From Mytilus californianus (Eukaryota), in assembly GCF_021869535.1 (NCBI RefSeq), contig NW_026262712.1, positions 78,988,001 through 79,052,000 of the forward strand: 64,000 nt of DNA, in the 5' to 3' direction. The notes beneath the pieces were generated by a model. That model searched no databases, was not told the origin of the DNA, and saw only the letters and a program-made list of their open reading frames with translations. Of this stretch, positions 9,527-53,040 are shown in pieces. Both the position numbers and the translations under genes were made by a program. Position 1 is the stretch's first letter; every line of letters begins with the position of its first letter.

Positions 9527-9790
9527 CAAAAGAGAGACGTGAGATACCATAGTGATATTCAAACCCATAAGTCGAAAACAAACTGAGAATGTCATGCATA
9601 AAAACAAAACAAAACACGATTTAAAGATAAGCAGCAGGATACAAAACACAACATACAAAACTAAATACTGAGCAACACGAACCCAACTGGAGACAGGAGT
9701 TGATCTCAGGTGCTTATGACGCGTAAGCAAATCCTGCTCCACATGTAGCACTTGTCGTGTTGTTCATGTAAGTACAAATTCAGCGATAAG
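9527..9790 (-). mobile_element. PLE family 3 3'-end element with complete structured module (9673-9762)
   Basis: Shares gataccaa.g.gatattcaaac.cataagtcgaaaa and actgagcaacacgaaccc motifs with about 19165-19270, 36015-36085, 46135-46330 and 53575-53760. Confidence 0.65.
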
Positions 9791-10273: not shown

Positions 10274-10655
10274 AATTTCCCCCCATCTTAGCAGCAATAT
10301 ACCAACTTCACCTGCATATGGGATATACATTTCCCAACTCATTCGGTATTCAAGAGCTTGCAGCTGTTACTCAGACTTTGTAAAACTTCACCAGTGTCTG
10401 AGCAGATGGTTGATGAACCAGGTTTAATATGTCAAAGAACGTCTCGTTCTTTTTCTAAAAAAGTTCATCGGAAGATACCAAGACATTGTTGATAAATATT
10501 CCGTATCAACTTCACAAATAGTTCATGGTGGTCTTTGAGTATAGATTCTAGGTACTGACGTTGTCTATCATCTTAATTACGTATTATAGTGTTCTTTTTA
10601 TTTGTCTTTGTATATTTTTAACCTTTACTGTTTAGTCCATTTTAGGTACATACTT
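10274..10655 (+). mobile_element. PLE family 2 RT C-terminal fragment plus start of 3' UTR
   Basis: NFPHLSSNIPTSPAYGIYISQLIRYSRAC...[frameshift]...YVKERLVLFLKKFIGRYQDIVDKYSVSTSQIVHGGL* (stop about 10536-10538). Confidence 0.85.
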
Positions 10656-17366: not shown

Positions 17367-17465
17367 AACTGTTATATAAGTGGAAGGTTTATCTAGTTAT
17401 AAAACTAGGTTTAACCCACCATTTTCTTCGTAAAATGTCTCTGCCAAGTAAGAAATATGGCAGTT
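17367..17465 (+). ncRNA. Decayed twister-like module, likely inactive
   Basis: P5 AACUGUUAUA/UAUGGCAGUU is kept, but the catalytic GA reads AA and P4 is disrupted. Confidence 0.6.
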
Positions 17466-20400
17466 GTTTTTCACTCGTTCCTTTGATTGATGACATTTGA
17501 TTTTGTTCGTTTTTATAGACTTCCCGTTTTTGAATTCACCTTGGTTATTTTTGTTATACTTTGTTATTGTTATATTAGGTACATTTTGGAAATTTTTGTC
17601 TAATGCGATTTATAAGTTTTGCTGAAAATAAGGTTGAAAACTGTAATGGTACATTTAAAGTTAACCCGCAAGTTTTACAAATACAATTAAATGTTGATGC
17701 TTAACGTTTAGCTGCAAATAGTTCAGGCATACATTTAGGACCCGAACGAATTGATTAATAAATCATCCGAGAAGGTTTTACAAAGTAGTTAGACCGCGAT
17801 GAAGTCATTTTATTTGGACTTCCACTGAAAGTAGAGAATTTAGTGATATGTCAGACATGTTTACCTTGAAACTGACCATCTATGGACATCCCAACGAGTT
17901 GTTGCAAATGATGTTTAATGTGCAGAGACCGTTGCACTCTCTCAATTGGATTCCTCAAATAAACGTTTTTCTTTGGTCTGGATTTGACTGTGTATTTTAC
18001 GAAAAAAAGTCCATGTTATCACATTTGTTTACCCCAGATACTGGTTATTCAATAAACATTTTACAATTATTTTTATTATATGGTTCTTATACAAATACAC
18101 ATCTGCGTTTTCAAACTTTTAACAAATCAAAGTTATAAATATCAGTATGTTTCGAACATTCATAACATTCAAGTATTTCACTGTGACATTGTCAACATTA
18201 ACGGAAAGAAATTCGTCATAGTGTTAATAATTTATTGATATAGGTCATGTGTCATCCGAGAACTAAATATATTGAAGCAGTGTTATGGATGACACCCTGC
18301 AAATTCGAAAATGTGTTAGTAGCGTAATTGTGACATTTGCTATGATTTATTTGACTATCTAGTTTCTGGTTACCTAATGTTTCTATCGCTGATTCCAAAT
18401 GAACATGAAACAAGAAGTCTATGGGGTTTCTTCTAGATATTTTTCAAGGCATTTACACTTTGTAGGCAACCTCACAACTGGGATATACCACACACCGTAC
18501 ATATTTTTTTACAGTGTTTTAAAAACGTTTTTGTAATGGTATTAGCTTGATCCTTCGTCGACTCATGATTTTGATTGTGCCATTAGTATTTTCTTACCTT
18601 TCCCAATTATAAAGTAATAACAAACAATCTGTCCATTTGTGAATCAAAATAAGACCATCTAGAATTTTAGAAAAACAAACCATATTTTATCGATATCTCT
18701 AATGGTCTTTGAAGGATTTATTTCAATCCTATGATATTTGAAGACAGACTCATTATATATAGATTGAAGAACTTATATTTTCCTCCTATGCGATTTAGTC
18801 CTGAACACTTTTTATCATGTGAATAAATTCACCTGACGCCATCAAAGCTCCATAATGTTTTCTTTTTGAAAGGGAAAACAAAAACTTTTATCGATATCCT
18901 ATTGCCCCTGTATATTTTACCACTGGTTACATATACAATTACTATTTTGTCCATGCTTATCACGTTTTCTCTGGAACAAAAGGTCAGAGCTTCCTATAAA
19001 TTTCATAACAAGCTTTTTGTGAGCATGCGATACTGTGTGGTCGGTTTTAACACTCATTGCTAATCTGAGTATGCTAATACGAGCCTTTGGTGTATCGTAT
19101 TATAAGTCTGATATCCTTTCCCAATTTCCTGTTGATATATATCCATTCACTAACGGCTATGTTTAAAAGAGATACGAAAGAACTCTTAAGTCGAAAATAA
19201 ACTGACAACGCCATGGCTAAAAACACAAAACACAACATAGAAAACTAATGACTGAGCAACACGAACCCCATCATTGAAAATGTTCGTCGCATTTGTTCTA
19301 AGTAACTACAAATCTTGGCGTTTTAAACTTTATAATCAAGCGTTATGTGAGCATGGTTTACCTTGTGATGCATTTTTGCATCAATTGCTCATCAACTTCG
19401 TGTGAACCGAATACTTTTATATTCTTACATTTAATGACCATGTAGGAGATTTTCGTCGTATTGTTATTAGAAACTTAAAATCAGGGCTTTCTGAAATTTG
19501 GAGTCAAGCTTCATGTGATCATGCTTTACCGTATGATGCGTTTTTTTTTATATATCTATTGGTTTACCGAAAATCTAAAGCGGGGTGTCATTTGTGGCAA
19601 ATAGCACAGTTCCACTTGTTTATCCTGAAATCGGTATATGACATTAACCTTACTATTTATCTTTTTGATAATTTTTAATTATGGTTATAATTACGGTTTT
19701 ATTTATGGTTAACACATAATCCTTCTAACGATATTTTTAGTTCATTATATTATATGAAAATGCTTAGCGGCGATGGTCACACAGTACCTCTGTATTGTTC
19801 TGTTTCTATCTCATTTCCTCATTAAGCTACTCATTAAAAATTCTACCCCTTCAAAGTATTGGTATACTATGAAACAAACATATCAGTTTACGTTGTAAAC
19901 AAATAACTAATGATTGTATCTTAGTGATATGATACAGCCAAAATATTAACAATCTTCATATATTTTTAGTATAATATAGTGTAAATATACGAGTTTCAGG
20001 GTTTATTTGTTCGCTTGAGTTGTTGTAATTGTAATTGTAATTGAAAACAAAAATCGAATGCTACAAATACGTTTTATCGCGGTATGATATTGCGTTAACA
20101 GTAAAAAGGAAAAAAAAAAATCTGAATCAATGATTCGATTGATTTGAAAGACAGTTATTCCGAAGTAAATGAGTACTATGGTTTAGACTCCTTAAGTGAA
20201 ATTATGAAAAACCAAAGTGAAAGTCCTTTATCAATAATAAGAGCTGTTTGATAGATAAATATGATACCAAGTTTTAAATCAACATTTACCAGTATATTCA
20301 TTGTACAGGATACTTTGAAGCTAGAAAACAATAATTTGCGACTCATGTGTTAGATATGAATACAGTATTTCAATTGTATTGTAAATAGTCATATATAATA

Positions 20401-23770: not shown

Positions 23771-24480
23771 AAAAGTAAAACAACAAAATTACCGAACTCC
23801 AAGGAAAATTCAAAACCGAAAGTCCCTAATCAAATTGCAAAATCAAAAACTTAAACACATCAAACGAATGGAAAAACACTTGTCATATTCCTGACTTGGT
23901 ACAGACATTTCCTTATGTAGAAAATGGTGGATAAAACCTGGTTTGATAGCTAGTTAAACACTCTCGCATTGAATTCCATTATATTGACAACAATGTGTGA
24001 GCAAATTAAACTTTAAGACATAATAGATAAAAATGTGAAAATTTGGGGTACAGCAGTCACAGTTGTGTTATAATCTTAATCACTATAAAAAACCCAACTA
24101 TGTCAACAAATAAAAACAAAATTGCATATAGAAACTCTATAAACAAAGCACATAAGCAAAAATGAAAGACAAAAATACATACAAAAAATGACCATAGCAC
24201 AATAACCAATAACACTATGGCGGGATGTATGAATACATAGCCACGCTAAAAGGATATTACCAAAAATAGACTAAACAGTAAAGTATAAAAATGTACAAAG
24301 ACAAATAAAAAGAACACTATAACACGTAATTAAGATGATAAACAACGATAGTACTTAGAATCTATACTTCCAAGACCATTATCTATTATTTGTGAAGTTG
24401 ATACAGAATATTTATCAACAAGGTCTTGGCATCATCCGATGTAGTTTGTTAGAGGGGTTTAAAGACAGACATCTTTTTAC
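23771..24480 (-). mobile_element. PLE family 2 3' end: RT C-terminus, 3' UTR and twister module
   Basis: The reverse complement of 24290-24470 aligns with 10450-10620; it continues into the ACC/GGU twister module (23881-23968) and the ttttgttgttttactttt terminus. Confidence 0.85.
23881..23968 (-). ncRNA. Decayed twister-like module in the PLE family 2 3' UTR
   Basis: L4 UACCAAGU, P4 UCUG/CAGG and P3 are present; the cleavage-site UAA reads UUA, T1 is disrupted and the 5' P5 arm is missing. Confidence 0.6.
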
Positions 24481-26295
24481 CTGTCTTCTTAACTTCGTTT
24501 TTGCATAAATGTTATTAACAAGCCAAAATTGTATCTAAGGAAATACAGTGAACATGTATTGTTCCAAAAGCAAAGTTTATGCTGAATCTCGACAATTAGG
24601 GAGACGGGCGATTCTCAGACAGTTGAATGGTACGCTGTACCTGATAGCTATTTGCATTTAGAAACTTTCGTCTATTACCGTCATATCTGAACTGTTAAGA
24701 AAAAGCCCGAGGTAGTTTTTGTCACTATATATGCAGATATATAATTTGATGATATATGACATGATAAATTTAATGTCTGTACTATTCAGAGTTTGGAAAC
24801 TCAAAGAGAAGTAATGTTATCTAAATTGTTTATGTTCTTATGATTTTTGTATTGTCATTCTTATAAGTCGGAGGGGTTAATTATCTTTTAGAGATACGAT
24901 GTAGTGTTGCCAAACTTTCTACATTTTCTTTTATTTACACGAAGGAACAAAAATCAATTGAGGAGGAAATCCAATTATTCATGGCAAGCAGGTAACAAGT
25001 GCTTTTGGATGTCTTGAGGGTATTCAATTACACAGACATATCTGGACATATTCAAAACAATCATTAACAAAAAAACTTAATTATGAAAAATATATGGATA
25101 TTTCTGGTGCGGATTTCCATAGTTACAAGGAATGGCCAAAGAACATATCCCAGATGTAATACATTATTAAGTCAGCAGATCCATGGAACACAAGGCTAAT
25201 TATATTGGTTAAATTGACAATTAATTTATCTGACGGAGATTATATTAACCTTTGCATTTTCCGTGGTTATGTTATCGTTTTGAGTATAAATCTTCAACAT
25301 GTTTTCTTTTCAAAAACGATGTATCCAAGACAGTATTCTATAAATTTAAATAACATTATCTATCTACATATAACTAATATATCATGTAACGGAAGAGCTG
25401 TAAGACCTAAGTTAATACGAATATATATATATTAGATTGTAGATTGGTTGTTTTTAGTAACTATAATCGTTCTCTGATGTAAAATTGCTGATTAGTGTTT
25501 TAGTTATCTATTATACCAGTATTGTAGATTTAGTGTTTTCATTCACTTATAATTATTTTAATGTACTGAATATACCTTGTTGTTATTTTAGTGGTCGAGA
25601 TTCAAAGGGGGAAAGTTGAGATCTCTCAAAAAATGAATGTTCATGTAACTTTCAAAAGTCATAAACCTCGTCGGAGATTGTCTTTTGTTAAATCTTAATG
25701 TTTTTTTTTCATTTCGGAGAATTTCGCCAAAATGGTATATTTATGAAAGTCCCACGTGTTTTTAATAAAAAGAAGCCAATTGCTAAATTTATGAAACTGC
25801 TTCAATTAGCTTGTGATTGCGTCAGTAAACCTCGAAAACTGCAAATTATATTTAGAACAATCTGTTAAAATGTCTTCACACATGTATGTCATATTATTTG
25901 GATGTCCGGCATTAAATCAAAGCCGTTAAGTTATTGTCATGATAACGTAATAATTATTGATGTTTTGCAGATACATTGTTTTAAATTACTTCGTTTTATA
26001 AGACGTGTTTCAACAGTGTATTCAAATTTGGCATTATAGTTGAAATCAATATGTGTTCCTCTCATTCTACGCAGTATTCATTTATTTAAAACAAAATTAC
26101 ACGAAGATGATTATATGTCTTTAAATAATCTAGATCCACTACTATTTAAAACTAACGATATCCTGAAAATGATCCTCACCAGCTTTACGAATTACTTTCT
26201 TCCTGGGCATTTAAAAGAATTAATAAAAGGAATTGTGGGGAGTGGCTGACTAAGACAACATTTGTTTGATACTAATGAAGTTACAGCAGCGCACA

Positions 26296-27310
26296 AATAA
26301 AATTGAGTATGGAAATGGGGAATGTGTCAAAGAGACAACAACCCGACCATAGAGCAGACAACAGCCGAAGGCCACCAATGGGTCTTCAATGCAGCTAGAA
26401 ACTCCCGCACCCGGAGGCGTCCTTTAGCTGGCCCCTAAACAAATATGTATACTAGTTGAGTGATAATGGACGTCATACTAAACTCCAAATTATACACAGG
26501 AAACTAAAATTAAAAATGAAACAAGACTAACAAAGGCCAGAGGCTACTGACCTGGGACTGGCGCAAAAATGCGGCGGGGTTAAACATGTTTTTTGAGATC
26601 TCAACCCTCCCCCTATACCTCTAGCCAAAAAATGTAGAAAAAAAAACCGCACAACAGTACGCACAGTAAAACTCAGTATAAGAGAAGTCCAAGTCCGATG
26701 TCAGAATGGGAAACAAAAGAAAATAAACAAAATGACAATAATACATAAATAACAACAGACTACTAGCAGTTACTGACATGCCAGCTCCAGACCTCAATTA
26801 AACTGTTTGAAAGATTATGTCTTCATCATATGAATATCAGGCATAATCCCTCCTGTTAGGGGTTTAGTATTATACCGTCATAAAATATATGAGAAGAACA
26901 TAACCCGTGTCATGCTAACAACTAGTTTTAAAATAAATGTGTTTAGTTCAGATGCAAAGACCCTATAAGTGAATCAATATTAAAGCCAAAATATGCAATC
27001 TTTAATGACCTGACAACAATATCCCTTCTTAATAAGTCTGTTTAAAGGTTTATTAGCTTTTGAGGTGAATACTGACATTTTTGTGCTTTGTAAAGTATAT
27101 TACCATAAAAGATTGGATGTGAAATACCCGAACGTATAAGATGTCTGCATGTTGAGTTATATTTACGAATGATGTCCTTATACCGATGATAAAATTTAGT
27201 AAATGTTTTGACTAGTTTATGGTATTGAAAATTCTGGTGTAATAATTTTTCAGTAATACATAAATTTCTCTTGCTGAAATTCAATACGTTGTTACATACA
27301 CGAGCGAATA
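26296..27310 (-). mobile_element. Second, shorter 5'-truncated copy of PLE family 1
   Basis: Closely similar to 48837-49860: RT C-terminus (NLCITEKLLHQNFQYHKLVKTFTKFYHRYK) plus the full 3' UTR, same 3' end (aataaaattgag on +). Confidence 0.9.
26535..26626 (-). ncRNA. Type P5 twister-like ribozyme in the second family 1 copy (P4/L4 mutated)
   Basis: Same fold as 49071-49162; T1 CCC/GGG intact, L4 UCCCAGGU, P4 CCAG/CAGU weakened. Confidence 0.7.
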
Positions 27311-29674: not shown

Positions 29675-29852
29675 GTTATCAACGGTACCAGGATTATAAT
29701 TTATTACGCCAGACGCGCGTTTCGTCTTCACAAGACTCATCAGTGACGCTCAGATCTAAATAGTTATAAAGCCAAACAAATACAAAGTTGAAAAGCATTG
29801 AAGACCCAAAATTCTAAAAAGTTGTGCCAAATACGACTAAGGTAATCTATAT
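29675..29852 (-). mobile_element. Hammerhead-bearing retrozyme-like repeat
   Basis: Shared flanks gttatcaa.ggtaccagg and gcattga.gacccaaaatt with copies at 14.4, 35.6 and 52.9 kb. Confidence 0.7.
29707..29748 (-). ncRNA. Minimal type I hammerhead ribozyme, intact
   Basis: CGUCA-CUGAUGA-GUCUU(GUG)AAGAC-GAAA-CGCGCG-UC^-UGGCG; stem II differs from the 52965 copy but still pairs. Confidence 0.9.
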
Positions 29853-35158: not shown

Positions 35159-35550
35159 TTAAATAAAGACAACAGTAGTATACCGCTGTTAAAAATTCAT
35201 AAATCGATTGAGAAAAAAACAAATCCGGGCTACAAACTAAAACTGAGGGAAACACAAAAAATATAAGAGGAGAACACAGACACAACAGACACACTAAAAT
35301 GCAACACACACAGAAACGAACTATAAGATAACGATAGCAATTTTCCTGACTTGGTACAGGACATTTAAGAAAAAATGGTGGGTTGAACCTGGTTTTGTGG
35401 CTAGCCAAACCTCCCGCTTTAATGGCAATGTTAAATATAACACTAAAATGACAACATCACATGACAGGACTACAATACAAATATATAGAAGAACATACAG
35501 GACAGAGAAACTCACAAATAAACAATACAATAGAACATTACGACAAGCTA
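35159..35550 (-). mobile_element. Twister-bearing non-autonomous element (aaataaagacaacagtagtata terminus)
   Basis: Homologous to 43473-44030. Confidence 0.75.
35335..35430 (-). ncRNA. Type P5 twister-like ribozyme (ACC/GGU subfamily), core intact, P5 decayed
   Basis: GCGG-GA-GGU-UUGGCUAGCCACAAAACCAGGUU-CAA-CCC-ACC-P3-G-UCCUG-UACCAAGU-CAGGA. Confidence 0.7.
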
Positions 35551-36937: not shown

Positions 36938-37232
36938 TATGTACCCCTATTTGTGACATTTTTACCTATTATGTCTGTTTGTTTTGTTCACACAATGTTG
37001 CCAATATAAGGGAGTTTTATGCGACTGTCATACAAGTGAGAGGTTTAGCTAGCTATAAAACAAGGTTTAATCCACCATTTTCTACATAAAGAAATGCCTG
37101 TACCAAGCCAGGAATGTGACAGTTGTTTTCCATTCGTGTGATGTGTTTAAGTTTTTGATTTTGCAATTTGATAAGGGACTTTCCGATTTGAATTTTCCTT
37201 GGAGTTTGGTATTTTTGTTATTTTACTTTTAA
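36938..37232 (+). mobile_element. PLE family 2 3'-UTR fragment with twister
   Basis: Reverse complement of 23771-24060; related fragments at about 17330-17570, 31415-31555, 48160-48240 and 51505-51641. Confidence 0.8.
37024..37123 (+). ncRNA. Type P5 twister-like ribozyme (ACC/GGU subfamily), near intact
   Basis: P5 ACUGUCAUA/UGUGACAGU, GUGA-GA-GGU, U^AA (37068/37069), UCC-ACC, P3 AUUU..AAAU, G, P4 CCUG/CAGG, L4 UACCAAGC. T1 is ACC/GGU; one T2 pair is A.C. Confidence 0.75.
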
Positions 37233-43472: not shown

Positions 43473-44030
43473 AATAAAGGCAACAGTAGTATATCGGTGT
43501 TCAAAAGACATAAATCGATTGAGAGAAAACAACTGCTATATTCCTGACTTGGTACAGGACATGTTAAGAAAAAATGGTGGGTTGAACCTTGTTTTATGGC
43601 TAGCAAAACCTCCCGCTCACATGGCAATGTTTAAAAATATATCGCTAAAATGACAACACTACGTGGACAGAAATACAGCACAAACACTCATCACAGAGAA
43701 ACGCACAAACAAATAATATAGTCGACATACCATGCAAACCGCAGAACAACAGCGAACATCTTCTATCAACGACAGACACTACAGGACATCACAAACAGTG
43801 ACGCACTTACGTACAAACATGCAATCTCGAACATTATACAATTATTTTCGCAAAACCAGTTCAAACAATTTTCATGACAATGATGGAATTGAAAGGCTAT
43901 TTTATAATCATTTGGACTACAAACGATAAGACATAACACATTATCTAACCGAAACCATAACAGAAACATAAAAAATAAATACATGAATGTTGGATGTACA
44001 AAATACCGAGACACGTCGAATAGCAATGCA
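43473..44030 (-). mobile_element. Twister-bearing non-autonomous element, same family as 35159-35550
   Basis: Shared terminus, twister module and upstream segment. Confidence 0.75.
43532..43628 (-). ncRNA. Type P5 twister-like ribozyme (ACC/GGU subfamily), near intact, C^A site
   Basis: P5 AUUGCCAUG/UAUAGCAGU, GCGG-GA-GGU, CAA-CCC-ACC, P4 UCCUG/CAGGA, L4 UACCAAGU (T2 A-U, C-G). Confidence 0.75.
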
Positions 44031-45340
44031 AATTCACACTAACAGTAACTTGTTATTTTGCAGTTGCAGAAATGTTCTTATTACTTCGTAAGCTTCAAGC
44101 ACTATCGTAAAAACTCCATGCGTCCAATACCTTATTACAATCTATTTCCTCATTCTGGATACATCTCCTCAGCAGCACATACCAGTATAAAATATATATG
44201 TCACTATCCTTCTTCTAATCTGTTTTCTTCTTTTTTAATATTATATGTTTATTCCTTTTTTACTAGATATGCTGCAATAGTAATTTATTCCTCTTCAAAT
44301 ATGAAATTTAAGTTTTAATCATGTTAATTATATCCGATATCATTTCATATTTTTTTTTATGTTATTCGGCTCATCATTTAACAGTGTTCAAAATGCATAT
44401 ATATATAAGTTTAAGAGTATTGGTCTATGTTTGGATATCGACATTAAACAAAATGATTCTTCTGTTTTTCAGGGAGTCGTAATTCTTATCAAGATGGACA
44501 TGTCCACTAGACAGATAGCAGAAGTATGGTACACTCATGGTTATAAATTGTACATGTTATCATTATTCATAATTATGTATAGTGGTCTTCATTTTAAATT
44601 TGCAAAATAACATCAGGAGACACAAACATTAGATATATTTTTCATAAACTTTGTTCTTCAATAAAATAAATACATTTCTTTATATACATGTGTGTCAATA
44701 TTAATCCTAAACAGGTCTGTATTTTTGGAATATGATGAAATGAAACTGTACTAACTTTTAATATGCATTTTAGAATAATAATAAAAATAAGATATTTCGG
44801 AATCAGACATTTATGCGAGCTTGACATTATCACATGACGAATTGAATAATAAACATATCATCTTCAAAAATAGAGCATGTATATTCCTGTTGGTTTGTGA
44901 CTGAATAAAGGTTGAACTAAAACAGAAAAATATGTTTGTATTTAAATATTTCAACAAACAGACAGGAAAGATAAAAAAGTTGTCCTCAATTGTTCATGAA
45001 TCAATATTATTTTTTTGATAGTCAAAATTTCGACTTTGGGATTAGAAATATTTAGAATCGACATTAAGTTTTTGATTTTTTTAATAGAAAAATAAAACTA
45101 AATTTGGACGACCAGTATATGTTTAAAGAATTTATTTCAATTAATGTCAATATAAACGAATATAAATAAAATGAGATACATGTACAAAAACAAAATTATT
45201 TTAATTCAAATCCTTGATAAAAAAATCGACAGAGCACATTTAAGTCGTTTTCGTCATAGAACTCCGTCGACCTTTTATGTATTGCTTATGGTTAAATTTA
45301 AAATGTTGAATGCATCGACAGCAGATTGTGCGTTATCTCA

Positions 45341-45560
45341 AATAAAATTGAGAATGGAAATGGGAAATGTGTCAAAGAGACAACAACCCGACCAAAGAGC
45401 AAAAACATCCCAAGGCCATCACTGGGTTTTCAATGCAGAGAGACAATCCCGCACTTAACTCCGAAACATAAAAATGAGCAAAAATTAAAAAAAAAAAAAA
45501 CAACATACAAGACTAACAAAGGCTAGAGGTTCCTGACTTTGGACAGGCGCAAAAATGCGG
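45341..45560 (-). mobile_element. Internally deleted 3'-end fragment of PLE family 1
   Basis: Same 3' terminus and 3' UTR; homology stops at 45560, inside the twister module. Confidence 0.8.
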
Positions 45561-45624
45561 TACCCTATAATGTATTTACAATTGTTAACATAATGTATCA
45601 TATTTCTATCAAGATTATAATAGT

Positions 45625-46045
45625 ATAGATATAAGAAGATGTGGTATGAGTGCCAATGAGACAACTCTCCATCCAAGTCAAAATTAAACCATTATAGGTC
45701 ACAGTACGGTCTTCAACACGGAGCTTTGTCTCACACCGAACAGTAAGCTATAAAGGGCCCCAAAAAAATACTAGTGTAAAACCAATCAAACGGGAAAACC
45801 AACGGTCTAATCTATATAAAAAACGAGAAACGAGAAACGAGAAACACTTATGAACCACATCAACAAACGACAACTACTGAACATCAGATTCCTGACTTAG
45901 GACAGGTGCAAACAAATGCAGCGGGTTTAAACGTTTTAATGGTACCAAACCTTCACCCTTTTTCTGAAACAATAGTGTAACATCACAACATAGAAAGACA
46001 CACTATAAAATATCAACTGAAATAGCTTAACTCAATCAAAAGACA
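45625..46045 (-). mobile_element. Non-autonomous PLE-like element, family 4 (aagatgtggtatga terminus), carrying the intact twister
   Basis: Terminus aagaagatgtggtatgagtgccaatgagacaact is shared with copies near 5380, 5540, 6975, 8375, 33410, 41025, 43130, 46440 and 52530. Confidence 0.75.
45884..45967 (-). ncRNA. Type P5 twister-like self-cleaving ribozyme, apparently intact (best copy)
   Basis: UCAGA-AAAA-GGGU-GA-AGG-[UUUGGUACCAUUAAAACGUU]-U^AA-ACCC-GCU-GCA(UUUGUU)UGC-A-CCUG-UCCUAAGU-CAGG-AA-UCUGA. P5 UCAGA/UCUGA, P2 ACCC/GGGU, P3, P4 CCUG/CAGG, T1 CCU/AGG, T2 GC/GU. Predicted cut between 45929 and 45928. Confidence 0.85.
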
Positions 46046-46134
46046 TATTAACACCATTGAACATACACTGAACAAATAAATTTGACCTATGACACAATGT
46101 AAATACAAAAATAAAAAAAAAATAGGTTCACTTA

Positions 46135-46330
46135 TAAGAGAGGCGAAAGATACCAAAGGGATATTCAAACTGACAGCATCGTGGCTACAAAAGAAAAAAA
46201 GACCAACTGACAAATAACAGTACACAAAACAAAACATAGAAAACTAAAGACTGAGCAACACGAGCCCCACCAAAAACCTTGGGGTGATCTCAGGTGCTCC
46301 GGGAGGGTAGACAGATCCTGCTCCACATGT
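46135..46330 (-). mobile_element. PLE family 3 3'-end fragment truncated in the CCACATGTGG palindrome
   Basis: Best-preserved module sequence (46256-46330); homology stops at ccacatgt. Confidence 0.7.
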
Positions 46331-48130: not shown

Positions 48131-48836
48131 AAAAGAGTCGGCTCTAAACGGTAAAAAGTTAATTTTGATTTTGCTATTTGATAAGAGACCTACCGTTTTG
48201 AATTTTCCTTGGAGTTCGGTATTTTTGTTATTTTACTTTTTACGTCGTTTATTTTTGTTTGTAATCAGTGTAAAACTATTTTTATATTTTGGTTTGATCT
48301 GTTTTATTTACTGTAAATCTTGTTTTCCCTTTTAATGTTTTATTTAAAAGTGATACGTAATATGGTAATTATAAGGTTGCTACACTATATCAATTTATAC
48401 TCTATCCCTAGCATGCTTTACTACAAGTAATCAGTATGAAAACAGATTTAGTTGTATCGTTAGGGTCAGATCATTTAACAGCAAAGGGGATCATACTTTT
48501 TATTGTATTATTAAATATTTATCTTTGACCTGTAGTTAACACCTTTTACAAAGCCATATTAGATATATGTATAATTAAACTCAAATCTCAAGAATAAATA
48601 ATTACAAGATAAGTTTTTATGTATCAGAATCGTATAAATTAGCCATCCTTGATACACGCACTATGTCATTGTAATTATAACTCACGCTACAAAGAAGCGG
48701 GAGAGGGTATATAGTTTTTGATCCGTGTTTCAGTCAGTCCGTCATTCATTTTTGTTTGCGGGTGCTCACTCAAATAATGTATATCCGATTGCTACCATGC
48801 TTGGCAATTTGATCACATATAATAAGAGGAAGGTCA

Positions 48837-50465
48837 ATAAAATTGAGAATGGAAATGGGGAATATGTCAAAGAGACAACAACCCGACCAAAGAGCAGACA
48901 ACAGCCGAAGGCCATCAATGGGTCTTCAACGCAGCGAGAAAATCCCGCACCCGGAGGTGGTCCTCAGCTGGCCCCTAAATTAAATTGTGTACTAGTTCAG
49001 TGAAAATGGACGTCACACTAAACTCCAAAATATATATAACTAAAATTAAAAGACATACAAGACTAACAAAGGCCAGAGGCTACTGACTTAAGACAGGCGC
49101 AAAAATGCGGCGGGGTTAAACATGTTTTATGAGATCTCAACCCTCCCCCTATACCTCTAGCCAATGTAGAATAAAGAAACACATAGCAATACGCACAGTA
49201 AAACTCAGTTCAAAAGAAGTCCGAGTCCGATGTCAGAATAGGTAACAAAAGAAACTAAGCAAAATGAAAATGATACATAAATGAACAAAGGACTACTAGC
49301 AGTTACTGACATGCCAGCTCCAGACCTCAATTAAACTGATTGAAAGATTATGTCTTCATCATATGAAAATCAAGTACAATCCCTCCCGTTAGGGGTTTAG
49401 TATCATACCATCATAAAATATATGAGAAGAACATAACCCGTATCATGCCAACAACTGGTTTTAGAATAAATGTGTTTATTTCCGATGCAAAGACCCTATG
49501 AGTGAATCAATATTAATACCAAAATATTCAATCCTTAATGTCTTGACAACAGTATCGTAACTATATCCTTTCCGAATAAGTCTGTTTAAAGGTTTGGTTA
49601 GCTTTTGAAGTGAATGCCGACATTTTTTTGCTTTGTAAAGAATATTACCATAAAATATTGGATGTAAAATACCTGAACGCATAAGATGTTTGCATGTTGA
49701 TTTATATTTACGAATGATGTCATTGTACCGATGATAAAATTTAGTAAATGTTTTGACTAGTTTGTGATATCGAAAACCCTGGTGTAATAGTTTTTCAGTA
49801 ATACAGAGATTTATTTCGTTGAAATCAAATACGCTGTTACATACACGTGCTAATCGAACGAGTTGAGATATATAAACACCCTAAGATGGCGACAAGGGAA
49901 CGTCACCATCTAAAAATGGATAATTAAAAATAGGAAATGAACAATCATCTCTTTTATCATAAATTTTGGTATTAAGCTTCCCGTTAAAGATAAAGATATC
50001 AAGATCCAGGAAAGGGCAGTGTTCATTGTTAGTATTAGCTTTATTTAAAGTCAGTTCGGCAGGATAAATCTCTTTAGTGTACATACTGAAGTCGTCATTA
50101 TTGAGAGCCAATATATCATCTAAATATCTAAAAGTGTTATTAAATTATTGATTCAAATGTTGTTTCGATGGGTCTTTGCTGATTTTAGTCATAAATTGTA
50201 ACTCATAACAATACAGAAACAGGTCCGCAATCAGTGGTGCACAATTATTCCCCATGGGAATTCCGATAACCTGACGATATACGGAATCTCCATTGCGAAC
50301 AAAAATGTTATCTAGTAAAAATTCAAGGGCAGTTATAGTATCAAAGCAGGTCCAATTGGCATAGTTCTTTTGTTTGTTGTTACTAAAAAATGACCTAAAA
50401 GAGTTTGAACATATATATTTGCATTCCGACTTTTTAAATGCCCATTTAATCAAATGTGTACAGGA
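48837..50465 (-). mobile_element. 5'-truncated Penelope-like retroelement, family 1 (C-terminal RT, Naiad-like), with twister module in the 3' UTR
   Basis: One frame reads ...YRQVIGIPMGNNCAPLIADLFLYCYE...FRYLDDILALN...CPFLDLDI...KIYDKRDD...GVYISQL...KLLHQGFRYHKLVKTFTKFYHRY...SLHRK* (ends 49476), with in-frame TAA (50145) and TAG (49881). No GIY-YIG follows the RT. The 3' UTR is about 640 nt. Confidence 0.9.
49071..49162 (-). ncRNA. Type P5 twister-like ribozyme in the PLE family 1 3' UTR (slightly decayed)
   Basis: P5 GGCUAGAGGU/GCCUCUGGCC (10 bp), P2 CCCC/GGGG, GA-GGG, UAA, GCC-GCAUUUUUGC-G, P4 CCUG/CAGU, L4 UCUUAAGU. Predicted cut 49118/49117. Confidence 0.75.
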
Positions 50466-52892
50466 AAGTTGTTTCATGATGCTAAATAAACAACTACATA
50501 TGACATTGCAACCTTATTCTATTATGTATTCACATATAATACGAAGATCCCTATTGATTGTCAGGTCAATAACGTGAAGGACAAGGTCAAAGTTACTAAG
50601 AAAAGACCGAAACTCGTGTTGAAAAATGGTTTCTAGGCGCTAAATCAAATATGATATATAGAATTGCAAACTAACTTGAACATATGGCCACATTATGACA
50701 GTACAACCCCTATTGGTTTGCAGGTAACTTTGTCCAAGATCAAGGTCATCGTAACTAACAATAGACCGCAATTTATGCAAAAGACTGCTGAATCAAATTA
50801 TTGCAAATGTGATTATATCTTTACGTTGATATATGATCACATATAGTGAAAAGGAGATCCCTATTAAATTATGAGGTCACTGTGTTCAAGGTTAGTGTCC
50901 CTTATAATGAAAAGAGACCGAAACCTGTTCAAAAAATTGTTTTCAGGGTGCATTATCAAATACAACATACTGCAATTCCAATCTTAGATAACTGTAGATA
51001 CATGTTCACATATAACGAGAGGAAACCTAGTTGATTTTGATGTTACTCGGTCTAGAAAAAAATTTGTGTAAGACATTATTACTGGCTAAAATCATAACAG
51101 AAACAGTAAACAGTAAAAAGTGTCATCAATTCACTATGAGCTGTTTCTTTTCATGTGAGAGCCGAGGGAAAAGTTGAATGATGACATTTGATCATAGTGT
51201 AAAAATATGTTTTATATTGAAGATTCCTCAATCTGCTTTACATTTTCAATTTGTATATCCAAGAGCATTTTTATTTTCTTTAACCGAAAATTAAGTTTAA
51301 CTCTATTTTCGTGCGCATGATAAGTATTTCCCGAAAACAATTACTATGTACCATGACATATGTAGGCATAGAACAGAACAGCCAATGAAACGCATGTAAG
51401 GTCTAGCTTCCCTAATGGACTTTTGCTCATCTACGCGATTTATAACTTTGAAAGCGTCATGCAAAATGTATAAGGATATTTGTAAATCAAACTTTGATAT
51501 CTAACTGAAAAGTAAAATAACAAAAATAACGAACTCCAAGGAAAATTCAAAACGGAAAGTCCCTTATCAAATGGCAAAATCAAAATCTTAAACACATCAA
51601 ACAAATGTAAAACAACTGTCATGTTCCCGACTTGATACGGGTACTTTATAGAATGTCATCCGTAATTATTTAATATTGCATAATAAAGGCAACATTGTCT
51701 TTTAGAAATGTAAAATCTAATATTATCGCTGTTAACAATATCATTGATTATCAGCATAATATTTCCTAAAGAACGTAACGAAAAGTTAGAGTGTAATATT
51801 CTATAATATTCCTCTCGTGCAAAAATAGCTTCAGTTTGTCAGTTTCAGATATATGTTTTGATAATCAGTCACAAAAGTATTAATTTTTTTTATTTTAAAC
51901 AGTTTTTCACGCTTTGCTTGCTAGCTCGTGCAATATACAAATCATATGTTACCATTTTCTATGCGATGTTTATGTCACGTTTGTGTGGGGGAAACTTTTT
52001 GTTATTAAACTTTATATCAAACAAGGAAATGTTGGCATACGCTAATGATACATGCATACAAATCGCAAAGACGATAAAAATTAAAAGGAGAACGTGATAA
52101 ACAGCCAGCAAACCATTTGGCATGATCCAAATAGCTCTGTTCGAGGCAATTAGTAATTCAATGAAACAAAAAAGGGTCTAGCATATACCCCAAATATTCA
52201 AACGACAACACAACAAATCGAAAAAAAAAGCTATGACAACTACTGACAGTTTACCTTACCCGGACTAAGGATGTATGTACTTAGTTTTGAGTTCTCTCTC
52301 CTTCTCATTTAATCTTAATCAATGGAATAACTATAAGAAGACAGAATACGATGGATGCTCACTAGATGTCTTACATTGATTTCTTTTGATGTTGTCATTC
52401 TTTTATAAATTTGATATACCAGTTGTGGTTGTAGAACTGTTATGTAGTTTCCCAGTATAATAAGACATTACATACGATGGCCTATAATTGCTAACTACCA
52501 CTTCATTTTAAATCTTGTGGATAGTTGTCTCATTGGCAATCATACCACATGTCCTCATTTTAATATTAAAATACAACAAGAACTTGTTTAATCGACAAAA
52601 TTGATATTGGAATTTTTTTGCGTACTCCCACATAAAGGTTTAAAGAAATATATATCAAATTTCAAATTATATTGCTATAACTCATACTTCAAATATACTC
52701 AAAAACAAATAGTATACGTTATCATATCCTAAATATAAGCTTGTATTTACATATGTAGGCGACGGTTTATCAGTTCGTCAACATATGTACTACTGACATT
52801 TCTGTTTTAGATAGTCCATATTATATTACACATATTCATTTAATTTATCAATAGATTTTTATTTGTATAATTGTTTTGAAAGGATTGAACAT

Positions 52893-53040
52893 TTTTTGGA
52901 ATTTTGGGTCCTCAATGCTCTTCATCTTTGTACTTTTTTGGCTTTATTACTATTTTGATCTGAGCGTCACTGATGAGTCTTATGTAGACGAAACGCGCGT
53001 CTGGCGTAATAAATTATAAGGCTGGTACCTTTGATAACTA
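52893..53040 (+). mobile_element. Hammerhead-bearing retrozyme-like repeat
   Basis: Reverse complement of the 29.7 kb element; contains the intact HHR. Confidence 0.75.
52965..53006 (+). ncRNA. Minimal type I hammerhead ribozyme, intact
   Basis: CGUCA-CUGAUGA-GUCU(UAUGU)AGAC-GAAA-CGCGCG-UC^-UGGCG. Stem I CGUCA/UGGCG, palindromic stem III ACGCGCGU, GUC cleavage after 53001. Confidence 0.9.

Follow-up and report, generated by a model that had tools for sequence, protein, structure and literature searches.

What is the 84-nt segment at positions 45967-45884, on the minus strand, of a 64,000-nt stretch of the Mytilus californianus genome (assembly GCF_021869535.1, contig NW_026262712.1, positions 78,988,001 to 79,052,000; the whole of this stretch is called the window below), and what kind of repeat carries it? 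An earlier note had described this segment, referred to here as the flagged copy, as an intact, circularly permuted (P5) twister ribozyme within a mollusc dispersed repeat. We found that the flagged copy contains a twister core and that homologous modules recur at loci chosen by an independent signal. From these results, we consider it likely that the 84 nt represent one copy of a self-cleaving ribozyme of the twister class, type P5, and that this ribozyme is regularly present in the 3' untranslated region (UTR) of selenoprotein-type Naiad Penelope-like elements.

The twister core of the flagged copy

Read from 45967 to 45884 on the minus strand, the sequence resolves into UCAGA-AAAA-GGGU-GA-AGG-UUUGGUACCAUUAAAACGUU-U^AA-ACCC-GC-UGCAUUUGUUUGCA-CCUG-UCCUAAGU-CAGG-AA-UCUGA, where ^ marks the predicted cut. 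The elements follow the type-P5 order: P5, P2, GA, T1, N^AA, T2, P3 and P4, the last with a closing G-C and a U..AA loop. They lie as follows:

45963-45967, minus strand: 5' arm of P5 (UCAGA), pairing with 45884-45888
45959-45962, minus strand: A-rich junction between P5 and P2 (AAAA), which ends in A or AA in most families
45955-45958, minus strand: 3' strand of P2 (GGGU), pairing with ACCC at 45923-45926
45953-45954, minus strand: GA dinucleotide, with G 45954 at the predicted position of the conserved catalytic guanine of twisters
45950-45952, minus strand: 3' strand of pseudoknot T1 (AGG), pairing with CCU at 45899-45901
45927-45929, minus strand: predicted cleavage site U^AA, with the putative cut between 45929 and 45928
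45923-45926, minus strand: 5' strand of P2 (ACCC), identified by P2 pairing and covariation
45921-45922, minus strand: T2 pseudoknot strand GC in loop L2, pairing with GU at 45895-45896 through one G.U and one C-G
45907-45920, minus strand: P3 hairpin UGCA-UUUGUU-UGCA, found in the minimum free energy (MFE) fold, in the covariation analysis and by RNAalifold
45891-45906, minus strand: P4 and its loop L4, CCUG-UCCUAAGU-CAGG, containing the closing G-C, loop U, T1 strand CCU, AA and T2 strand GU
45884-45888, minus strand: 3' arm of P5 (UCUGA), from the sequence readout and the MFE fold

The features reported for twisters (PMC5408937) include a four-pair P2, a conserved GC in L2 that forms T2, a near-invariant G-C that closes P4, a U.A pair in the loop with two nucleotides between it and the P4 closing pair that bulge out to form T2, a three-pair T1, an adenine 3' of the cut, a conserved guanine and a P1 that is conserved though dispensable. 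The flagged copy has all features on this list save a canonical P1. All four P2 pairs form (GGGU/ACCC), as do the three T1 pairs between L4 and L1 (CCU/AGG) and the T2 pairs (GC/GU; other modules have GC/GC, AC/GU, CC/GG or UC/GG). The conserved L1 arrangement, N^AA opposite GA and the T1 strand, is present, and P4/L4 reads CCUG-U-CCU-AA-GU-CAGG; for comparison, the rice twister P4/L4 is given as CCGGTCCCAAGCCCGG (PMC11662667). The open P5 helix of a type-P5 twister is represented by the 5 bp of UCAGA/UCUGA, which are identical in the relatives L016 and L018; elsewhere the P5 arms are unrelated and span 6-21 bp. Among 44 modules parsed by fixed rules, GA is kept in 40, UAA in 38, the closing G-C in 39, the loop U in 42 and the loop AA in 39. 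The MFE fold of the flagged copy recovers P5, P2, P3 and P4. Together, the readout and the fold bear out the claim that the minus strand contains every element of the twister core, and the observation of this core is confirmed.

If the module behaves as studied twisters do, the RNA would cut itself between U (45929) and A (45928), and the catalytic residues would be G 45954 and A 45928. The product lengths of 39 and 45 nt predicted in the earlier note match this putative cut.

The comparison with Rfam covariance models gave a mixed picture. The best homologue, L019, aligned to the full length of the Rfam Twister-P5 model (RF02684) with 23.1 bits and an E value of 0.0041 when a short slice was searched with laxer filters. 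In this alignment GAGGG, UAA, GC and GUCCCAAGCC were matched, including all conserved loop residues, and the P1 hairpin of the model was skipped; the GA of L019 aligned to the GA of GAGgG in the consensus and its UAA to the consensus UAA. Short slices of four other loci gave sub-threshold matches to the twister-P1 model, at 20-24 bits against a threshold of 67.2. The module family is thus recognisable as twister by the Rfam consensus, yet it falls below the curated threshold.

The closest known system is the type-P5 twister (RF02684, clan CL00120; Oryza sativa and env22 structures). The module shares with it a 4-bp P2, GA followed by the T1 strand, N^AA, the L2 GC for T2, a G-C-closed P4, the loop form U-NNN-AA-NN, an optional P3 and an open P5. 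It differs in having two tandem palindromes in place of the P1 hairpin and in scoring below the Rfam gathering threshold; in addition, the flagged copy has T1 CCU/AGG and a T2 with G.U, and its location is an animal retroelement 3' UTR. Tested twisters tolerate insertions in L1, imperfections of P1, P2 and P4, and G.U wobbles within the pseudoknot of two pairs (PMC11662667), and the nucleotide 5' of the cut may vary (PMC8501958).

The Naiad host and the conservation of the module

We found that the flagged copy belongs to a longer repeat, which can be read with the help of two arrangements elsewhere in the window:

45624-46088, minus strand: host repeat copy, a 465-nt 5'-truncated Naiad 3' end with no open reading frame (ORF) left, 85-87% identical to the region that follows the reverse transcriptase (RT) ORF in L016 and L018
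49081-49154, minus strand: module of the GGGG/CCCC family, decayed; upstream of it are an RT C-terminus (50480-49479) and a SECIS-like element (49424-49360; SECIS, selenocysteine insertion sequence)
26545-26618, minus strand: second decayed module of the GGGG/CCCC family, downstream of an RT remnant (27308-26952) and a SECIS-like element (26891-26827)

Upstream of the 49081 module lies the C-terminal half of an RT (GIPMG..., FRYLDDI; 50480-49479), interrupted by in-frame TAA and TAG stops. From the RT end at 49479, the order runs through the SECIS-like element at 49424-49360 and the module at 49081-49154 to a tail of about 260 nt, and the same layout is repeated at 27308-26545 on the minus strand. 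The two SECIS-like elements (49360-49424 and 26827-26891, both minus strand) score 32-33 bits against a threshold of 35; across the window and the fetched loci, SECIS_1 matches score 25-33 bits, under that threshold. Homologous loci contain VPADKA(A/S)NN...V-stop-R, with DKA present in L006, L016, L054, L041 and L031. In these five independent loci an in-frame stop lies eight residues past DKA (near nt 950 in L016, L054, L041 and L031), and it reads as TGA in L006 (960-962).

These features are those of Naiads. Craig et al. 2021 (PMC8557442) described Naiads as having a C-terminal RT with a DKA motif and abundant 5'-truncated 3' ends in bivalves; clam and spider Naiads contain in-frame UGA codons, one of them eight residues past DKA, and a SECIS just after the stop (PMC8557442). 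The elements studied here share the C-terminal RT (of the YLDD type, with a 3' UTR after the ORF end at 49479), the DKA in place of DKG, the UGA at +8, the SECIS after the stop and the abundant truncated 3' ends, and the stop eight residues past DKA in the five loci falls at the published selenocysteine position of the clam and spider elements. As to the N-terminal GIY-YIG endonuclease and CxC linker of Naiads, the contigs stop short of the N-terminus; a C-N-C motif was found in L006. A Pfam search of the RT ORF pieces found no domain, and the Naiad identity therefore rests on these motifs and the literature description. The term "dispersed repeat" in the earlier note was thus right as to the repeat and is narrowed here to the 5'-truncated 3' end of a Naiad Penelope-like element. 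We also considered a tRNA-derived short interspersed nuclear element, as GGUUCAACCC resembles a B box, and rejected it: there is no properly spaced A box and no T-arm pairing, and the repeat runs into a Penelope-like 3' UTR.

Several further remnants accompany these copies. Among 45339-45454, 48836-48950 and 26294-26410 (minus strand), conservation reaches 88-90% over the final ~115 nt of the Naiad tail (ending ...ctcaattttat), which places the 3' end of the element about 260 nt past the module. Abutting the flagged copy is another 5'-truncated Naiad 3' end (45339-45560, minus strand), which belongs to the GGGG/CCCC family. In this single case the copy begins inside the module, at T2/P3 and a few bases past the predicted cut site; truncated window copies begin at varied points (45560 in T2/P3, 5809 and 46710 at P4), though these are few cases. 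The stretch at 46187-46330 (minus strand) is 74% similar to 9604-9746 (minus strand), and part of it also matches 19223-19273 at 92%; it is not covered by the alignment to the Naiad 3' end of L016 and L018. A third RT fragment, at 10320-10535 (plus strand), is distant, with 35% identity to the Naiad RT tail, and the 800 nt downstream of it yielded no module.

The module count in the window depends on how strictly the module is defined. A strict descriptor demanded pairing of P2 (4/4), T1 (3/3), T2 (2/2) and P4 (4/4, with the closing G-C), together with the residues GA and NAA and the loop form U-NNN-AA-NN; in the window it matched the flagged copy only. The loop-plus-stem sequence CCUGUCCUAAGUCAGG, with up to 3 mismatches, occurs 11 times in the window against 0.18 expected, and a covariance model found 12 window modules at E<=0.02, or about 16 when weak partial matches are included. 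The earlier estimate of about 17 intact or relic modules is therefore close as a count, with the correction that one of them is strictly intact. Five window copies form a divergent family with T1 ACC/GGU and T2 AC/GU (35344-35422, 43542-43621 and 23889-23972 on the minus strand; 37031-37113 and 17375-17454 on the plus strand). They keep P3, P4, T1, T2 and palindrome 1 (described below), P2 pairs only at 2/4 and the second palindrome is imperfect; no RT was found upstream of these five copies, and the family may be decayed or may use a different register.

We assessed the module at loci chosen by RT homology alone. The last 134 RT residues served as the query, 22 diverse matches were aligned, and the outside sample comprised 80 metagenome loci found by RT homology only and five loci from large ENA contigs. 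With the strict descriptor, an intact module was found on the RT strand in 13 outside loci and on the opposite strand in none; overall there were 14 matches in 322 kb of real sequence, compared to a mean of 0.125 per dinucleotide-shuffled set. Forty-seven loci extended 500 nt or more past the RT match, and sequence-only profile searches detected the module in 37 of them; in each case it lay on the strand of the RT, 250-920 nt downstream of the matched C-terminal segment. Eight of the ten module-free loci come from a distant RT group whose match is confined to the first 59-76 residues of the query; in these loci (L061, L065, L069-L071 and L083-L085; 40-51% identity over 59-76 residues) a downstream search returned neither the module nor a hammerhead of Rfam. 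Between diverged families it is frequently the module alone that can be aligned in the 3' UTR, of which it is the best-conserved island: families whose RT tails are only 44-60% identical to that of the window still have the module, with compensatory changes, although the rest of their 3' UTRs cannot be aligned.

The covariation analysis required some care in alignment. When all 42 modules were aligned with MAFFT, the 5' part of two subgroups was one column out of register; for this reason we used a covariance model built from ten intact modules and encoding only P2, P3 and P4, with which 45 distinct modules were aligned. Since gaps in T1 of the GGU subgroup were inconsistent in this alignment, elements were also parsed by fixed rules (44 modules). 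With T1 and T2 included, 93.9% of the cells of the full structure are paired, compared to 73.5% after shuffling of these related sequences, and the covariation score is 0.491 versus 0.164; neither value was reached in any of 500 shuffles, and slid controls gave about 0.04. T1 and T2 alone, which were not in the alignment model, are paired in 92.3% of cells versus 78.1% and score 0.374 versus 0.153 (again 0/500). RNAalifold, run on the MAFFT-only alignment, predicted P3 and P4 with a compensatory change at all eight pairs.

The rule-based parse recovered the individual changes. P2 occurs as CCCC/GGGG, UCCC/GGGA, ACCC/GGGU and GCCC/GGGC, its outer pair covarying over five pair types that include G-C, U-A, A-U and C-G. 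T1 occurs as CCC/GGG, CCU/AGG, UCC/GGA, UCU/AGA and ACC/GGU; the variable T2 pair as C-G, G.U, A-U, G-C and U.G; and P4 as CCUG/CAGG, ACCG/CGGU, AUCG/CGAU and GCAG/CUGC. For P5 we counted helices within 8 nt of the core, as the best helix anywhere in 40 + 40 nt proved too noisy a measure. The P5 arms are unrelated in sequence and form 5-21 bp, with a helix of at least 8 bp in 20 of 40 modules compared to 6% of mismatched-flank controls. The changes that the earlier note had listed between window families can all be found: T1 as CCC/GGG, CCU/AGG and ACC/GGU, P2 as CCCC/GGGG and ACCC/GGGU, T2 as G.U and A-U, the P3 closing pair as C-G and U-A, and P4 as CCCG/CGGG at 51625-51641. Its claims that unrelated P5 sequences still pair and that the structure covaries are likewise borne out, the latter in P2, P3, P4, P5, T1 and T2 with outside loci and with shuffled and slid controls. 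The twister interpretation, tested on independently chosen RT loci, is thus supported by sequence comparison, because the loci selected by RT carry the same covarying module.

Tandem palindromes at the predicted cleavage site

No closed hairpin of the canonical P1 type was found at the predicted cleavage site. Instead, the flagged copy has a 20-nt slot that contains two tandem palindromes:

45940-45947, minus strand: palindrome 1, UGGUACCA, in the P1 slot and following T1 after one or two U
45929-45936, minus strand: palindrome 2, AAACGUUU, ending immediately 5' of the predicted scissile bond

The missing P1 weakens the status of the module as a canonical member; twister catalysis may still be compatible with it, as P1, although conserved, is reported to be dispensable for cleavage (PMC5408937). 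The P1 slot of every family is filled by two palindromes in tandem, and a hairpin with a proper loop is absent. Palindrome 1 occurs in about 20 variants across modules, among them UGAGAUCUCA, UGGGAUCCCA, UGAGCGCUCA, ACGCGCGU and GGGCGCCC. Palindrome 2 has the form AAAC-NN-GUUU, with the variants AAACAUGUUU, AAACUAGUUU, AACCGGUU, AAACCGGUUU, AAAUGCAUUU and AAAUCGAUUU, and in 23 of 43 distinct sequences its end falls exactly at N(-1). Both palindromes vary among modules yet stay self-complementary, and their summed length has a median of 16 nt versus 4 nt in shuffled regions.

Because such palindromes cannot form hairpins, we reasoned that they pair between copies. Cofolding of two copies predicted domain-swapped dimers, joined by pairing of P5, P2 and palindrome 1 across the strands, with a calculated stability 7-16 kcal/mol greater than that of two monomers. 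The palindromic P1 slot suggests that the ribozyme may cut only as a pair and that its active form is probably a dimer, which would consist either of two RNAs or of two tandem copies in one transcript with the palindromes pairing between the copies. Our view of how an active site would arise from these palindromes is inferred. A fuller proposal is that Naiads carry, in the slot that hammerheads occupy, the first obligate-dimer twister, with two equal-length palindromes of 8-10 nt that pair between copies and with cutting only in multimeric transcripts; we offer it tentatively and remain slightly on the side of doubt.

This proposal has a precedent in the minimal hammerheads of other Penelope-like elements, in which helix III is a short palindrome; single units are inactive in vitro, dimers cut weakly, and action as a dimer was proposed (Cervera and de la Pena 2014, PMC4209133). 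In both systems a small self-cleaving motif, or putative one, sits in the repeated 3' part (for hammerheads, the pLTR, or pseudo-long terminal repeat) of a Penelope-like element, the cut-site helix is reduced to palindrome, two copies are thought to be needed, and high variation is accompanied by compensatory changes. The twister module differs in ribozyme class and fold, in having two palindromes rather than one, and in occurring in the Naiad clade, which was reported without canonical hammerheads.

The window itself contains two candidate type-I hammerheads, at 52964-53007 (plus strand) and 29706-29749 (minus strand), which score 33.0 and 32.6 bits against an Rfam threshold of 34. In both, helix III is the palindrome ACGCGCGU beside the cut site, as is typical of minimal Penelope-like hammerheads. 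Two ribozyme classes, hammerhead and twister-type, therefore occur within one 64-kb window.

The module could alternatively act as an ordinary monomer, in which a weak U-A stem (UUU/AAA) serves as P1, palindrome 1 lies in the loop and a few inserted nucleotides precede the cut; the palindromes would then serve another step, such as pairing of RNAs for template switching, which would yield tandem or inverted copies. The MFE fold does pair GUUU with AAAC around palindrome 1, and the dispensability of P1 and the insertions upstream of the cut site that tested twisters tolerate (PMC5408937, PMC11662667) would accommodate such a stem. A hairpin cannot explain, however, why palindrome 2 ends exactly at the cut site, or why its centre varies yet stays self-complementary, and cofolding favours dimers. 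We therefore view the monomer as rather unlikely, while regarding it as the most serious of the alternatives considered here.

Alternative explanations and meaning for Naiad biology

A number of results weigh against assigning the module to the twisters. Covariance model searches, which the earlier note had proposed as a check and whose failure it had named among the refuting outcomes, returned no twister match for the flagged copy or any other window copy: there was no Rfam twister match in the whole window, either at the gathering threshold or at E<=10, and none at E<=10 in 151-nt slices around the flagged and 49081 copies. Even L019, the best homologue, lies 14 bits below the Twister-P5 gathering score of 37.6. 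The single-sequence fold of the flagged copy is unexceptional compared to shuffles (z = -1.28). The fit of the structure is also uneven: the ACC/GGU family of the window fits P2 poorly, the largest subgroup (T1 UCC/GGU, 16 sequences) has U.U at the outer pair, and P2 of a G(A/U)GN subgroup contains an internal mismatch, C.A or C.U. About 10 nt, namely palindrome 2, separate palindrome 1 from the cut site, an arrangement undescribed for twister. Finally, the modules are related sequences, so the shuffle tests overstate independence.

One explanation that would accommodate part of this is that the Naiad 3' UTR contains, in this module, a conserved and structured RNA with a function other than cleavage, such as an element for RT recognition or priming or a dimerisation signal, and that this RNA is a descendant of twister or a lookalike. 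Structures that bind RT are frequent in retroelement 3' UTRs, the P1 slot is non-canonical, and its two palindromes resemble a dimerisation signal; the Rfam scores stay under threshold, and many copies tolerate mismatches in T1 and P2. Such an RNA leaves unexplained, however, why the catalytic GA and N^AA are kept in ~90% of modules, why the closing G-C, loop U and loop AA are conserved, why both pseudoknots covary, and why every conserved loop residue of Twister-P5 is matched; we consider this explanation improbable. That the resemblance is a chance match within a common repeat, multiplied by copy number, is hardly credible: the strict descriptor fits one window copy, its expectation of ~0.025 per 128 kb of searched strand, though small, is not negligible genome-wide, and the fold z-score is weak, but 14 strict matches stand against 0.125 expected, a homologue reaches an E value of 0.004 with Rfam Twister-P5, and families with RT tails only 44-60% identical keep the module with compensatory changes.

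We therefore favour a type-P5 twister in the Naiad 3' UTR. From its sequence, we infer that the module is capable of self-cleavage, as the earlier note had in calling it active. Its role would be the one proposed for the hammerheads in other Penelope-like elements, trimming tandem or partial-tandem transcripts to unit length. We regard the flagged copy, contained in a dead 5'-truncated insertion, as a fossil, intact in sequence, of an active family and not as a host gene.

The searchable literature, which we consulted as the earlier note had suggested, contained no report linking twister with Naiad or other Penelope-like elements, nor one of this association in a mollusc or bivalve. Craig et al. 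2021 (PMC8557442) reported that canonical hammerheads are missing from Naiads, which in bivalves and many other invertebrates are the most abundant Penelope-like elements, and suggested that ribozymes are perhaps unnecessary for them; the word "twister" is absent from that paper, and the module fills the gap. A 2019 review states that pLTRs always contain hammerheads. In a paper of November 2026, the de la Pena group still names hammerheads alone for Penelope-like elements and, for twister, Perere-3, and a 2026 preprint on Penelope-derived retrozymes leaves twister unmentioned. CHiTA predicted type-P1 twister candidates in bivalves, with no Naiad context. The nearest retroelement parallel is provided by the twister variants of the Perere-3 (RTE) non-LTR (long terminal repeat) retrotransposon of Schistosoma mansoni, which are likewise integral to a retrotransposon, with a relaxed P1 and any base 5' of the cut (PMC8501958). 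Those twisters are of type P1, lie at the 5' end and have roles in 5' processing and translation (PMC8501958), whereas the module is of type P5 and lies in the 3' UTR of another class of retroelement.

The layout of the module escapes current Rfam models and type-P1 descriptors, and its inclusion would add perhaps tens of thousands of twisters per animal genome. A twister that depends on dimerisation would parallel the dimeric hammerheads of other Penelope-like elements, and its paired palindromes make the idea directly testable. A conserved twister in the 3' region of Naiads would overturn the reading that these elements do without ribozymes; if this is true, two unrelated ribozyme classes have been recruited for the same job within one group of retroelements.

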